Origin: Ramazzottius varieornatus
Taxonomy: Eukaryota > Animalia > Tardigrada
Length of the DNA stretch: 13,935 nt
Direction of reading: 5' to 3'
Assembly (NCBI GenBank): GCA_001949185.1
Contig: BDGG01000031.1
Span: 1-13,935 of the forward strand
Positions 2-13,935 of the stretch are shown here, piece by piece. The translations under genes were made by a program, and so were the position numbers. Under the pieces are notes generated by a model. The model ran no database searches and was not told the DNA's origin. It saw only the letters and a program-made list of their open reading frames with translations. Each line of letters opens with the position of its first letter. Positions within the stretch are counted from its first letter, which is position 1.

Positions 2-427
2 ATGGACGATGCGCCGAGAAAAAAACGACTGCAGAAGAACACCATGCTCAACCTTAAGGCTGGCGCACTGATCACGTCCGATGAGTTCGTGGAGACGGTG
101 GAGAAAATGCAAGCGGATTCCGCAGCCAAGAAAGCTGCGTTGAAGGCGGCGGATGCTGCTACAAAAGCAGCCTCTAAAGCAGCAGGAAAAGTAACAGCGA
201 GTGCTGCGGAGAAGGCGGCGAGAAAAGCGGAGAAAGCAGCTGAGAAAGTCGCAGAGAAAACGGCGAAGGCAGCAGAAAAAGCAGCTACGCAGGCTGCAAA
301 GGCAGTGGAGAAAGCTGCTGCGAAACTCGCTGCTCGGGATGCCAAATTGTCAAGAATACAAAAGCGAAAGACTGTCGATGATATACCACCACCGAAGAGA
401 GCAAGAAAAGAAACGTGCAAAGCGTAA
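2..427 (+). CDS. C-terminal part of a probable pogo/Tc5/Fot1-like DDE transposase (5' part outside the window), with a Lys/Ala-rich helical tail
   Basis: The frame is open from the window edge. KAGALITSDEFVE resembles the post-DDE 'xxlTsxE' motif of pogo-type transposases. It is followed by a charged K/A-rich helix and an NLS-like PPPKRARK. It lies about 350 bp upstream of a TIR matching the pogo element at the right edge. The catalytic domain is not visible. Confidence 0.55.
   Translation: MDDAPRKKRLQKNTMLNLKAGALITSDEFVETVEKMQADSAAKKAALKAADAATKAASKAAGKVTASAAEKAARKAEKAAEKVAEKTAKAAEKAATQAAKAVEKAAAKLAARDAKLSRIQKRKTVDDIPPPKRARKETCKA
134..334 (+). repeat. Six degenerate 11-aa (33-bp) coding repeats
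   Basis: AALKAADAATK / AASKAAGKVTAS / AAEKAARKAEK / AAEKVAEKTAK / AAEKAATQAAK / AVEKAAAKLAA, read directly from the ORF 2..427. Confidence 0.75.
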
Positions 428-773
428 CCGAAAGGGCTTCTGAGCTTAACTTTAATACGGCGGAATCCGCAGTTAGTACGAGATTTTTGCCACTTTTCTG
501 ACCAGTCCCAAATTTGCCTCTGACCGTTTTATATTGTGTGTAAGAGCAAGGTGCCTGTTCTAATTAGATAAGTGCGGAGTAAGTTACTCTGTTGGATGCG
601 GAGATAAAAGCTTTCCCAGTCGGTCAGAAGAACTGTGAAGTCTGTGATGGATGCACCAGCGAAAGTGATGCCGCATCTGAAATTGTCAATACCGGACCGC
701 GCCAAAACAATACCGCAGTTCTTTTGCGGTACCAAAAGCCAACTACATGTGCTGCCATCGCATACCGCAGAGT

Positions 774-828
774 GTGTCCACTCCGATGTCAAATTTTGGG
801 GTGTCCACTCCATTGCCGCCTCCTCGTA
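774..828 (+). mobile_element. Right (3') terminal inverted repeat of a pogo-family transposon, with TA target site at 827-828
   Basis: 774-830 is the reverse complement of 13219-13275 with 4 mismatches in 57 bp. It contains an internal direct repeat GTGTCCACTCC x2 and ends ...CTCCTCG|TA. The MITE at 5861-6005 has the same terminus. Confidence 0.8.
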
Positions 829-3200
829 TGACACTTATTGGACCAGCGGCCAAGCGGATCAGCTTTCCAGACAATACGGACGGTATCTCGGACGCCTGCT
901 TTGTAAGTCACGTACTTGTACAGCCTGTTGGGCAGAACTAATGGCAGTACACGCACCTGGCCTAAATGTGGGCATGGGACGAAATGGGACGAAACTGTGG
1001 GTGACGGAGCGAAAGCGGCGCTGCTAAGATTGATTTAATTGATTGGTCAACCTCAGCTGGCCCGCGCCGCCTTCGCTCTGCTGCCCACATTTATCCTGGG
1101 CGCGTGTACTTATATCCTTGGTCTGACATGAAATACGGTATCACGCGGTTTCTTCCTCGCAGACCATATGCTCTTTTTTGATTCCGTCGGGTACGTGCGG
1201 GTGGAGGACGATTTCGGCTACATAAGCTATATTCGCTTCCTCAACTACGGAAGTAACCTGGGGGACGCTGCAACTATCTTCTTGGTAAAAAATCGAAACA
1301 AGGGTTAACATGTGAATGTTCCTGTCCGTGAGTTGGTGATAAATAATTATCATGACTTTCGCAGCACAATACCATACATCAGCTTGCTGCGTCCGAGTAT
1401 TTTTTGGGCAATGCTTTCACCGACCAGGTTCATTCTGCTCTGAAGAGCGTATTTCGCTTCCTGAATTGGCACGTGGCAGTTGAGGTCAATTTATACCAGT
1501 TCGGCATATACAGCCGATATCAGGGACCTGCTTTTGACGTCTGCGCCGCCATTCCAACCGGCCAGCTACTTCCAGCTGAGCAGGACGTTCCGCTCCTGGT
1601 TAACGGTTATCAGAAACTGAAATACAAGAACGGAACCTACAAGCCCTACGAGTACAAGTACAAGTACGGACCCGTTTATCCTGATGGGTCGCCCCGACCA
1701 AAGGAGTTTCCGGTGATGGGACGAACTGACGACAACATGGCGTCCAGCGACAGCGCTTCTTTGGCATGGAATCAAGTCATCCCACAGCCACCCGCCAATC
1801 CCGATGCTTCGTCTTTGTCGCCACCGTTTTCAGCCAACGTTGGTAAGATGGTGGACAAACTGACCGGGATGAGCATAGATCAGCTAGCGGATGCGCTGGC
1901 GGCGTGGAACAGTATCAAGGCAGCTGCGGCTGCAGCGTCGGGCGTAGTCATCGACCAAGGAGCCAAAATCTTTGACAAACAAGCAGCCTATACGTATGCG
2001 CACTTTTCCCCCAACCAAGTCTTCCTACCAGGCTATGAAACTTTTGATCTTTTAGTTTTCTATTGTGGCATTGGGAGTACGCCGCTGGTAGTGTCAACAA
2101 ATACAACAGCCCCGAAGATATTTGGAAGAGCGAGAGGCTGGACTCGTACTTCGCATCTGATGCCACGTAAGCAGGGCGCATGCAGATATTTTTTAATTAA
2201 TTATTCCATGCTATAGTCCCCAGGCAGTCACTTTATGTTTTTCAGAGATCTCGACAATATAGTCAGTAAGTACCATAAATGGTGCTTCGTGCACTATTTT
2301 CTGACTTATTATTATCATTTTTCCCAAAGTATTCTGTGGTCCAGGTAATTTAACACTGTACTCATAGGTGGACTGACGCGAAGGAATGGCGCCGAAGCCG
2401 TTCGAATCATCGATAAAATTGCGCTCAATTTAGCGTCCATATCTCGAATGAAGGGCGAAGCTTGGTACACGATCTCCTACTTCACGGTAGGTAAATCGGT
2501 ACACGTGCCTGGCCTAAATGTGGGGATGGACAAAAATATGGGGAACGGAGCGAAAGCGANNNNNNNNNNNNNNNNNNNNNNNNNNNNNNNNNNNNNNNNN
2601 NNNNNNNNNTTTTGTCCTCCCATATTTAGGCCAAGCGCGTGTACCGCTCAAGCATTGACTGATTGTTCAGCGCTATGGCGTGTCCAAATTGTGTTGCTGT
2701 CAATCAATCTTTCTCCATTTCAGTTCACGACGGATACTTATATGGAAGCCGCCAACTTTTTCCTAGGAAACGCATTGAAAGACGAGGCATACTCTGCTTT
2801 GGAATCGCTATTCACCTTCATCAACTTCAAAACGTACCAGATTTACCACGGTTACAGTAACCGCTACCGCTTCCGTCCGTACGCCGACAACTGGGAGATG
2901 ATTGGTGTTGTGCCGACCACTTGCTCCACCGTCGATATTGACTACGATGGCCACGACGTCTGTTCGTACATGGATGACAACTACTTTCGATCAATGGGTC
3001 ACGGCAGACGCAGGTACGCATCGGAGAAGTACCGTCCAGAGTACGACGATTCCCGCTATCATGACGACCAGCGACGCGACCAGTACGACCGAAATCCTGT
3101 CCAAGATGGTTACAATGCAGATCGTGTGGCTCGACCGGTCAACTATGGCCCGCCTGACGACTTCCAGCATGATGAGCGCCCAGGGCTAGATGCGCGATAG
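827..3200 (+). CDS. Spliced, 5'-truncated gene encoding two tandem degenerate globin-fold-like domains plus a Tyr-rich linker and tail
   Basis: Exons 827-902, 1163-1284, 1365-1993, 2056-2166, 2246-2265, 2368-2486 and 2724-3200. All six introns are GT-AG with compatible phases (1,0,2,2,1,0), giving an uninterrupted 517-aa frame to TAG 3198-3200. Internal duplication: EYFLGNAFTDQVHSALKSVFRFLN vs NFFLGNALKDEAYSALESLFTFIN. Globin helix patterns: A-helix TGMSIDQLADALAAW, E-helix LDNIVSGL, GH/H LGNAFTDQVHSAL. Confidence 0.8.
948..1108. mobile_element. MITE family A, copy 1 (Tc1/mariner/pogo-type, TA TSD), in intron 903-1162
   Basis: TA|CACGCACCTGGCCTAAATGTGGGCA ... TGCCCACATTTATCCTGGGCGCGTG|TA. 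Imperfect TIR of about 25 bp. A second copy lies at 2500-2643. Confidence 0.85.
2500..2643. mobile_element. MITE family A, copy 2, in intron 2487-2723; contains an assembly gap
   Basis: TA|CACGTGCCTGGCCTAAATGTGGGG ... CCCATATTTAGGCCAAGCGCGTG|TA. Shares the internal ACGGAGCGAAAGCG with copy 1. Confidence 0.85.
2560..2609. other. Assembly gap (50 N)
   Basis: Run of N in the centre of the palindromic MITE. The true length is unknown. Confidence 0.99.
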
Positions 3201-3311
3201 GCGAGTCCAGCGCGCTGTTTCCTTAGCAACTAACTAATACCTGCCACAGTTAGCAAAATCCTGTTCGGGATTCGTTTATACTGTACTCAATTACGCCGCT
3301 CCCGTACCAAC

Positions 3312-4327
3312 CACTGCGTCACGTATTCATCTGTCCACCCCCATCTTTATTGAGAAAGTCATAACGTATTTCGTACTGATCCAATTTTGATAATTCAAAC
3401 CTCTTTGTGGAGAATAATGGTTAGTCTTCACGACCGCCTGACTTTTGTGTGCTAAAATCAACAAATCAACTAGTAACAGCGGCACGAGGAACTCCAAACC
3501 AACCTTGTTTTCGGCGCAGTGCTACTGAAGACAGCCATCTGCTGAGACGCTGCGCTTGTCATCGTGGCGTAGAGTCAAAATCGGGCTTTCGTACAAGCTC
3601 ATGCGAGAACTTTCTGGAGCTCTGCAGAGGAGGCTTCGTTGATGTGCTGATGTGGGCGTTTTGCCGCGCAAAACACGCTGGATCTTGCTGAACTGCGAGG
3701 TAAACGACGTGATTCGGGCATAGTGATTTTTCACTCGTAATTCGGGCATATTTATTCTCAGCTCTTGCTGCGCGTAATGAACTGCTTCTTGTTTCCTGAG
3801 GTAGACCAGCCCCTCTCCTCGAGGTTTCAATAGATTTGAGAACGACAAAGCGTTGTGGAGCACGGGAATTTGGCCTGGGAGAGGGATTTGTTGAAAAGGC
3901 CACCATTTTGAACGTAATTTAGCAGCAAGGAGGTCATACAGAAGACGGAAGCCCGTCGGAAGGAGTATTCACGATCGAAAATAACCGATAACATCTCTTG
4001 GTTGACACAATAACGAAACGTTTTCTACCGAGGTACGAAAATTCTTAAACGAGCTTTTTTGACAGTTCGATGTTGACTTTACGCTGCGTTGACAATCGCG
4101 TCTTCTCAACAGATGGCTGGCTTCCGCAGCACTGAGCCGAAAACAAGACTGCTTTTGGGCTTCGTCGGGTCGCTGTTACCTATATGATTTGTTGATTGGA
4201 GAGCTAGGAAGTCATGTGGTCGTAAAGAGCGAACGTCAGTCTCCACAAATTTGGTATCAAAATGGATAAGTATAACCTTTTCAATAAAACTGGGGCTGAA
4301 CAGATAAATATGAGGTACTGAGCAGTG
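3312..4327. mobile_element. ~1 kb foldback / long-TIR non-autonomous element (superfamily not assigned)
   Basis: Arms ~3324-3645 and ~4006-4310 are diverged reverse complements. The best block, 3504-3547 vs 4104-4147, matches 39/44. Possible CACTGC...GCAGTG termini. No clear TSD. Confidence 0.7.
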
Positions 4328-13220: not shown

Positions 13221-13935
13221 TACGAGGAGCAGGCAGTGGAGTGGACACCCCAAAAATTGACATCGGAGTGGACACAGCCATAACCCAGTAACCGATGGGT
13301 CGATTTGCTTTGCTTATTGCTCAAACGACAGATAAAACCTTAACAACTTGTTTGCTACCACACAAAAGCTGAGAGAGTTTCCAGAACGTCAGATTTTTCG
13401 TTCGCGAGCAGGAAGACTCGAACCAATGTTAAAGAGCCTACGACAGAAAGTCACAAAGGGCCGCCAGGGGCGCGCATGTCTTCGCTTGCTGTCATGATGA
13501 CTACGTCACCGGGCATTTTCATGCTCTCTAATGCCGTCTGAATGAAAGAAATCGTCTTGATGACGTACTTCCGACAGAATTTTCATTTCGCACGGTATGG
13601 TGATGGACTACTGTGCCAAATATCATAAAGGATTCCTGTAAGTTGTAACTCATCTTCCTGATCTTTATGATGGCTTCTTCCAAACTCAAGACTGCTGCCG
13701 AGGTCAGCAGAGAACTAATGGATTCTGCTCTCTACGCGGTAAAGAAATCTGGAGTAAGCAAGAAGCTTGCGGCGAAGCTCTTTGGAGTGTCTCGAACGAC
13801 GCTCGGCAGACGTCTCCAGAATCCGCGTCCAGAACGACATGGTGGCCGAACAAAGTTTCCAGCTCAGGTGGAAGACGAGCTCGTGGATCTGCTCACTTCT
13901 TGCTGTATCATGGGGATTCCCCTTAATCGCTATCA
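13221..13935 (+). mobile_element. 5' part of a pogo-family DNA transposon (TA at 13221-13222, left TIR 13223-13275)
   Basis: TA|CGAGGAGCAGGCAGTGGAGTGGACACCCC... is the inverted match of 774-828, and a transposase ORF follows at 13667. Confidence 0.8.
13667..13935 (+). CDS. Pogo/Tc5-like transposase N-terminus (HTH_psq plus start of CENP-B-type HTH); runs off the window
   Basis: Hand translation (absent from the ORF track): MMASSKLKTAAEVSRELMDSALYAVKKSGVSKKLAAKLFGVSRTTLGRRLQNPRPERHGGRTKFPAQVEDELVDLLTSCCIMGIPLNRY. It fits the psq pattern A..av..g.S.r.AAk.fGVsrtTL..R, the GR linker and E..Lv..l......G.pl. Confidence 0.88.
   Translation, partial: MMASSKLKTAAEVSRELMDSALYAVKKSGVSKKLAAKLFGVSRTTLGRRLQNPRPERHGGRTKFPAQVEDELVDLLTSCCIMGIPLNRY

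Follow-up and report, generated by a model that had tools for sequence, protein, structure and literature searches.

A transposon-split gene of Ramazzottius varieornatus probably encodes two globin-fold domains that have lost canonical heme ligation

Exon structure and transposon insertion

We analysed 13,935 nt of the genome of the tardigrade Ramazzottius varieornatus, hereafter the window, which forms the extreme start of contig C31. On its plus strand, positions 827–3200 hold all but the first quarter of a genuine spliced gene, which is split by a transposon and probably encodes a two-domain protein of globin fold that descends from globins and has lost canonical His-heme ligation (Table 1). 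Exon borders were derived from a three-frame reading of positions 600–3500 and from contigs of public sequencing runs subsequently placed on positions 300–3600. The seven exons join into 1554 nt, which is 517 codons plus one terminal TAG, exactly the open frame counted in a preliminary description made from the sequence alone. All six junctions proposed there were found as spliced GT..AG joints in RNA contigs of run X2 (902/1163, 1284/1365, 1993/2056, 2166/2246, 2265/2368, and 2486/2724), and joint 2486/2724 was independently present in run X5. As intron 6 (2487–2723) was removed in both runs, the reading frame does not depend on the unread letters of the assembly gap that lies inside it.

Within the window the gene is 5′-incomplete, having no start codon, and its open frame extends upstream in the transcript. 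The ATG at position 828 was rejected as a start, because with the confirmed joint 902/1163 its frame meets a TAA in the second exon of the window; codons thus start at 827. Since positions 827–828 are the TA duplicated by the transposon and the frame is open upstream in the transcript, segment 827–902 is the 3′ piece of a cut exon. A frame-2 reading of the letters upstream of 827 as helix B/C of domain 1 was likewise discarded, as this sequence is the inverted repeat of the transposon.

The missing 5′ half of the gene, with the signal peptide and helices A–C of domain 1, lies on contig C11. X2 contigs differ by ~1% from the window, carry a fully spliced message, and have 30 letters unrelated to the window immediately before 827, i.e. 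an empty site. The same 30 letters adjoin the other inverted repeat of the element in an X1 contig with 0 mismatches to the window. A genome search for them as one string returned nothing because they span a spliced intron: both pieces belong to locus L010, which occupies the start of C11 (minus strand), and after them come TA and the left end of the transposon; the spliced junction of L010 exons 2 and 3 equals the 30 letters preceding 827 in X2. From the X1 and X2 contigs and the L010 arrangement it follows that C31 adjoins the reversed C11, with a single collapsed copy of the transposon between them. Exon 1 encodes a Met followed by ~20 hydrophobic residues, judged by eye to be a signal peptide. 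The uninterrupted allele has nine exons and 2070 coding nt; its 689-aa product would be laid out as signal peptide, short Ser/Thr/Pro region, globin-fold domain 1, linker, globin-fold domain 2, and tail.

The inserted element is of the pogo/Tc1-mariner type, as indicated by its TA duplication, terminal inverted repeats (TIRs), and N-terminal helix-turn-helix. Its first open reading frame (ORF) has an HTH_psq domain (E value 1e-4, above the cut-off), and no DDE domain was detected by Pfam in the inserted element. Bases 1–826 are 100% identical to copies on C38, C11 (at 1.389M), and C3. Full copies are L030 (G000:C11:1387031–1389972), with 2,944 bp, 56-nt TIRs and TA at both ends, and L031. Given the complete identity of its copies the insertion is very recent, and with at least four such copies the transposon is probably still active. 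In a reference-type run the spliced 5′ exons enter the transposon and reach a stop within about 20 codons, and in reference-like runs the downstream exons occur only at low depth and partly unspliced; the insertion in exon 3 is likely to make the reference allele a null. The second ORF of the transposon has an Ala/Lys-rich terminal tail. Contigs C31, C11, and C3 all begin inside a copy, so that the same transposon causes several contig breaks.

Table 1. Features of the window and of the 5′ part of the gene on contig C11 (MITE, miniature inverted-repeat transposable element; UTR, untranslated region)
Feature	Position	Strand	Remarks
pogo-like DNA transposon, right-hand part	1–826 (TIR 773–826)	+	interrupts the gene; contig begins within the element
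TA target-site duplication	827–828	+	also first two bases of the retained exon piece; second TA at C11:782–783
Exon 1	C11 (L010) 1555–1137	−	ATG at 1555; 139 codons plus two bases; hydrophobic leader
Exon 2	C11 (L010)	−	79 nt; after phase-2 intron
Exon 3, 5′ piece	C11 (L010)	−	first 18 nt of the exon that resumes at window 829
Exon piece, 3′ part of exon 3	827–902	+	codons from 827; start of helix E, domain 1; aligns with helix-E region of P0015 and P0006
Exon	1163–1284	+	end of helix E, helix F, FG corner to G6, domain 1; joints 902/1163 and 1284/1365
Exon, 5′ part	1365–1562	+	helices G7–H, domain 1, with FLGN..FT..V.SAL motif; after phase-0 intron at G7.0
Interdomain linker, Pro/Tyr/Lys-rich	1563–1781	+	8 Pro, 8 Tyr, 7 Lys in 73 residues; equivalent P0015 stretch has pLDDT <50
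Exon, 3′ part	1782–1993	+	conserved Pro-rich pre-A extension, helix A, helix B to B12, domain 2; ends in phase-2 intron B12.2; head alignment, joint 1993/2056
Exon	2056–2166	+	end of helix B, helix C, CD region to start of helix E, domain 2; paralogue match E 1e-5
Micro-exon, 20 nt	2246–2265	+	inside helix E, domain 2; two X2 joints, each with a 20-letter side
Exon	2368–2486	+	end of helix E, helix F, FG corner to G6, domain 2; paralogue match E 6e-8
Exon part	2724–2930	+	helices G7–H, domain 2; after phase-0 intron at G7.0
C-terminal tail, Asp/Arg/Tyr-rich, plus stop	2931–3200	+	18 Asp, 13 Arg, 10 Tyr in 89 residues; TAG 3198–3200
3′ UTR, at least this length	3201–3519	+	X2 contig extends to 3440, X5 contig to 3519
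MITE copy	947–1109		within intron 903–1162; inverted repeat, direct repeats common to 2499–2644
MITE, 146 nt, with assembly gap (Ns) 2560–2609	2499–2644		26–29 nt terminal inverted repeats; wholly in intron 6

Fold, intron positions, and pocket residues

AlphaFold2 models of two relatives, the single-domain, secreted protein P0006 and the two-domain paralogue P0015 (RvY_16639), were used to assess the fold, which is assigned to the window gene by homology as its exons match the P0015 gene, the closest two-domain paralogue, at 37–47% identity (E 4.6e-43 for exon 1365–1993, then 4e-24, 5e-10, 6e-8, 1e-5, and 1e-3). For both models, the best 50 VIA-align entries among 48,161 PDB representatives were all globin or globin-like and were matched over their full length. 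Kumaglobin (5ziq_A) ranked at the top with P0006 (Z 15.4, root-mean-square deviation (rmsd) 2.6 Å, 152/155 residues) and with P0015 (Z 16.9, 2.2 Å, 154/155), alongside Glycera hemoglobin (Z 13.8, 147/147, and Z 15.8, 146/147, respectively). The Foldseek matches listed (about 45–50 per model) were all globins, with template-modelling scores by target of 0.54–0.70 for P0006 and 0.50–0.78 for P0015 (single-domain targets). Both models have the helix order A, B, C, loop, E, F, G, H, in agreement with the helices assigned in the preliminary description. The globin fold claimed there for both domains is thereby supported by modelling, and each domain would have diverged very far from an ancestral 3-on-3 globin (helices A, B, C, E, F, G, and H). 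Taken with the intron evidence below, we consider common descent from globins very probable.

The phase-2 intron of domain 2 (1993/2056) lies six residues before C2 and its phase-0 intron (2486/2724) 14 residues before the GH-corner Gly; domain 1 has the same arrangement, with a phase-2 intron on C11 six residues before Pro C2 and a phase-0 intron (1284/1365) 14 residues before the GH-corner Gly. In both domains these spacings equal those of B12.2 (phase 2) and G7.0 (phase 0) in the beta-globin segment quoted in the preliminary description, and the ancestral introns at these two positions appear to have been retained in both domains. A phase-1 intron in helix E is also common to the two. Position C2 is Pro in domain 1 (‘LWFPDD’, on C11) and Trp in domain 2, and the A12 pattern, a Trp 11 residues past a conserved Ser, recurs in helix A both in domain 2 (Trp codon at 1905–1907) and in the single-domain proteins. 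The internal duplication noticed earlier is real but weak: in a whole-genome search the seventh window exon matched positions 1383–1556 with an E value of 0.005 and 29% identity. In the family alignment, both duplicated copies share one set of columns with an invariant Gly, and each begins right after the phase-0 intron. Less could be kept of the gapless match to beta-globin exon 3, which has 5/26 and 2/26 identities, is not significant alone, and becomes meaningful only together with the fold and the introns.

A His shared by P0006 and P0009 at the penultimate turn of helix F marks position F8. Gapless alignment to it places Ser at the equivalent position in domain 1 of the window gene (AGC, 1225–1227) and of P0015, and Leu in domain 2 of the window gene, which reproduces the manually derived register. 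In the X2 strain base 1226 is A, giving Asn (AAC) at the domain-1 position, the sole replacement within helix F. The F-helix exon of domain 2 (2368–2486) contains no His. Position CD1, located by counting six residues from C2, is not aromatic in any member, in a CD region of variable length and with a predicted local distance difference test score (pLDDT) <50. On the question raised in the preliminary description, whether His loss is family-wide, the single-domain members keep a His at F8. The two-domain members carry Ser or Leu there, with Asn in the X2 strain, and by the count from C2 would lack a Phe at CD1. Judged from these residues, canonical heme binding has probably been lost.

Coding sequences of the window and of X2 differ by seven synonymous and seven non-synonymous changes, corresponding to a ratio of non-synonymous to synonymous differences per site (pN/pS) of 0.28, and five of the seven replacements fall outside the domains, in linker and tail. 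Over 240 nt of 3′ UTR, 10 substitutions and one deletion were counted, as compared with 14 changes in 1551 coding nt, so that the UTR diverges about four times faster. The numbers are small and point to purifying selection on the globin-fold modules.

Paralogues and comparison with known globins

Searches of the R. varieornatus genome recovered at least eight family loci including the window gene, some of them putative pseudogenes. A full two-domain paralogue with the same exon plan is located at C14:143–149k (L012/L016, G000:C14:144004–148714). The annotation divides it into RvY_16639 (486 aa, ending at helix C/CD of domain 2) and RvY_16638 (90 aa, helices G–H) and misses the exons between them. 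Two more two-domain loci on C14, L009/L013 (G000:C14:418759–423468) and L014/L015 (G000:C14:967476–972084), both have an in-frame stop where domain 1 otherwise carries its conserved Trp codon (A12), and L014/L015 has several further stops; they may be duplicated pseudogenes. The unit common to the family consists of a Pro-rich extension, a ‘head’ (helices A–B), a middle part, and a ‘tail’ with an invariant Gly, and matches to the tail only were found on C14, C6, and C2. Tails of the domain-1 type and of the domain-2 type are each conserved across paralogues; the two domains thus arose by tandem duplication before the family expanded.

Only 11 proteins, from metagenomes or run assemblies, were matched when 1.84 billion representatives were scanned exhaustively with HMMER. 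Among them, P0006 and P0009, which define the unit described above, are complete single-domain proteins with signal peptides; a word-indexed protein search returned almost nothing but the query itself and its paralogues. Hydrophobic, signal-peptide-like leaders are discernible by eye in P0006, P0009, and P0015. The literature searched for the locus tags of the paralogues and for tardigrade globins contained no description of the family and no mention of the tags.

Kumaglobin (PDB 5ZIQ/5ZM9), from the same organism, matches both models better than any other structure, the stretch before helix A included. By its PDB title it is a hexacoordinated heme protein; it has one domain and no detectable sequence similarity to the family of the window gene. 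It was reported by Kim, Fukuda and Inoue (FEBS J 2019; cited in PMC7380671), and the literature found cites no other tardigrade globin structure. The canonical Pfam globins of the R. varieornatus genome (PF00042) map to loci other than those of the family.

Vertebrate alpha- and beta-globins have identical intron positions and phases (B12.2, G7.0), the same spacing from G7 to the GH-corner Gly, and a similar start of helix H with an ‘F-T-x-x-V-x-(A/S)-A’ motif. The window family differs from them by its 2–5/26 identity in the exon-3 segment, by the absence of His F8 and the probable absence of His E7 and Phe CD1, and by a longer helix F and FG corner, a conserved Pro-rich N-terminal extension, and secretion. 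The perienteric hemoglobins of the nematodes Ascaris and Pseudoterranova are secreted, with two tandem globin domains per chain and a highly charged C-terminal tail of His/Glu/Lys repeats; they have retained His F8, and the heme they bind gives them a very high oxygen affinity. One of their structures (1ASH) matches the models with Z scores of 10.2 (P0006) and 12.3 (P0015). The window protein resembles these hemoglobins in being a secreted tandem two-domain chain with a charged C-terminal tail, but has Ser or Leu at F8, a tail rich in Asp, Arg, and Tyr, and a long Tyr-rich interdomain linker. Globin folds with neither proximal His nor heme are represented by the N-terminal domain of bacterial RsbR (2BNL) and by the sensor domains of Bacillus anthracis sporulation inhibitors (3PMC), which are among the structural matches of P0006 (Z 8.1–9.3, weaker than true globins). 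These are bacterial cytoplasmic signalling modules and have no intron or motif evidence in common with the window family. A review of globins lists non-heme globin folds only from bacteria, with no animal example (PMC7475203).

Alternative explanations and possible role

Several aspects of the evidence weigh against reading the locus as a gene for a globin descendant without canonical heme. The models are of two relatives, from which the fold is carried over by homology to the domains of the window gene. Both rest on shallow alignments (10–11 rows) and have low mean pLDDT, 56 for P0006 (10-row alignment, predicted template-modelling score 0.59) and 46 for P0015 (50–82 over residues 90–280, the domain 1 region). 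An ESMFold model of P0015 (residues 86–280) was poor and found nothing. Pfam Globin (PF00042) had no match, even at E 10, to the window exons or to P0001, P0002, P0006, P0009, P0014, and P0015. Searches of PDB sequences with phmmer and hmmsearch, using the exons, the unit profile, and the head profile, returned no globin, and hhalign against a globin of the same genome gave a probability of 0.2%. The equivalences at F8 and CD1 stem from sequence alignment to the models and not from residue-level superposition, and the FG region exceeds that of classical globins by six residues. The read evidence consists of assembled run contigs. Lastly, a metal or heme could be ligated by a Tyr next to the F8-equivalent Ser, a ‘SY’ pair that three paralogues conserve in domain 1. 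An ESM Atlas search with P0006 also yielded no globin.

The missing sequence and profile matches and the low pLDDT are what would be expected if the likeness to globins were an analogy, with AlphaFold snapping the weakly constrained helices of an unrelated lineage-specific protein to globin topology; according to the alignment tool's own warning, helical models can reach Z ~14 by chance arrangement. This explanation is very improbable in view of two modelled targets that are only ~30% identical and whose top 50 matches are exclusively of globin fold, with 146/147 to 154/155 residues aligned at 2.2–2.8 Å rmsd and no other helical fold among the top matches. Both canonical intron positions are moreover exact, phase included, in both domains, and Trp A12, Pro C2, and the GH-corner motif are present. 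The best PDB sequence match of the tail profile, marginal at E 0.2 and the only one to a globin, falls on the equivalent G/H region of a flavohemoglobin. The gene might alternatively be a decaying pseudogene, functionless in every strain and conserved merely through recent common ancestry, as might be thought from the transposon within a coding exon, the low and partly unspliced coverage in reference-like runs, and the in-frame stops of several paralogues. We hold this for hardly credible, because the insertion is very recent, the other strain combines an empty site with a fully spliced, open transcript, and the pN/pS and the faster divergence of the UTR argue for constraint on the protein.

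Non-canonical ligation of heme is known from some bacterial hemophores and as the Tyr ligation of catalases. The family could by analogy consist of extracellular redox or heme-scavenging hemoproteins that are ligated by Tyr, Met, or another His of the pocket. Retention of the fold under purifying selection, the His at F8 of the single-domain relatives, and the Tyr found immediately after the F8-equivalent Ser in three domains 1 (those of the window gene, P0015, and the paralogue at C14:420k) all accord with this, and the register of the preliminary description puts Met or Tyr near the pocket. Against it stand a domain-1 F8 position that varies between strains (Ser or Asn), unlike a ligand position, the Leu at F8 of domain 2 in an F-helix exon devoid of His, and a CD1 position that by alignment is non-aromatic in every member. 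We therefore regard continued heme binding as unlikely.

Under the preferred reading of a globin descendant that has lost canonical heme ligation, the protein would act outside the cell without heme. Its vestigial pocket may hold a hydrophobic ligand, or the Tyr-rich, charged disordered segments may make it a matrix or oligomerising protein; such a role outside the cell and independent of heme, whether that of a ligand carrier or of a matrix or oligomerising protein, has in our estimate an even chance of being correct. More tentatively, and with slightly less than even confidence, we propose that the loci form a lineage-restricted tardigrade family of secreted one- and two-domain globin descendants that abandoned heme in the two-domain branch. 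This could be the first animal family of non-heme globin folds, repurposed as extracellular ligand carriers or as a Tyr-cross-linked matrix, and in the reference strain one member may have been knocked out naturally by the transposon.

Few protein families have been studied as well as globins, and an animal family whose secreted members retain the fold and ancient introns but not the proximal His would show how far globins can drift. It would also allow the role of a globin pocket after heme loss to be addressed in a concrete example, in a family that sequence profiles miss. In the R. varieornatus annotation the family is labelled ‘hypothetical’ or split into fragments, and the window gene was missed since the transposon breaks the assembly inside it. 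The insertion allele and the strain with the empty site together would provide a ready-made natural knock-out with its control.

Repeats were also noted apart from the insertion in exon 3. Near the right end of the window, on the minus strand at 13223–13276, the family of the inserted transposon has another inverted-repeat end with 93% identity, and a partial copy is present at C31:20087–20541. Contig depth in run X5 was 446–818 over positions 2409–2630, and the MITE family is thus abundant in RNA or highly repeated.

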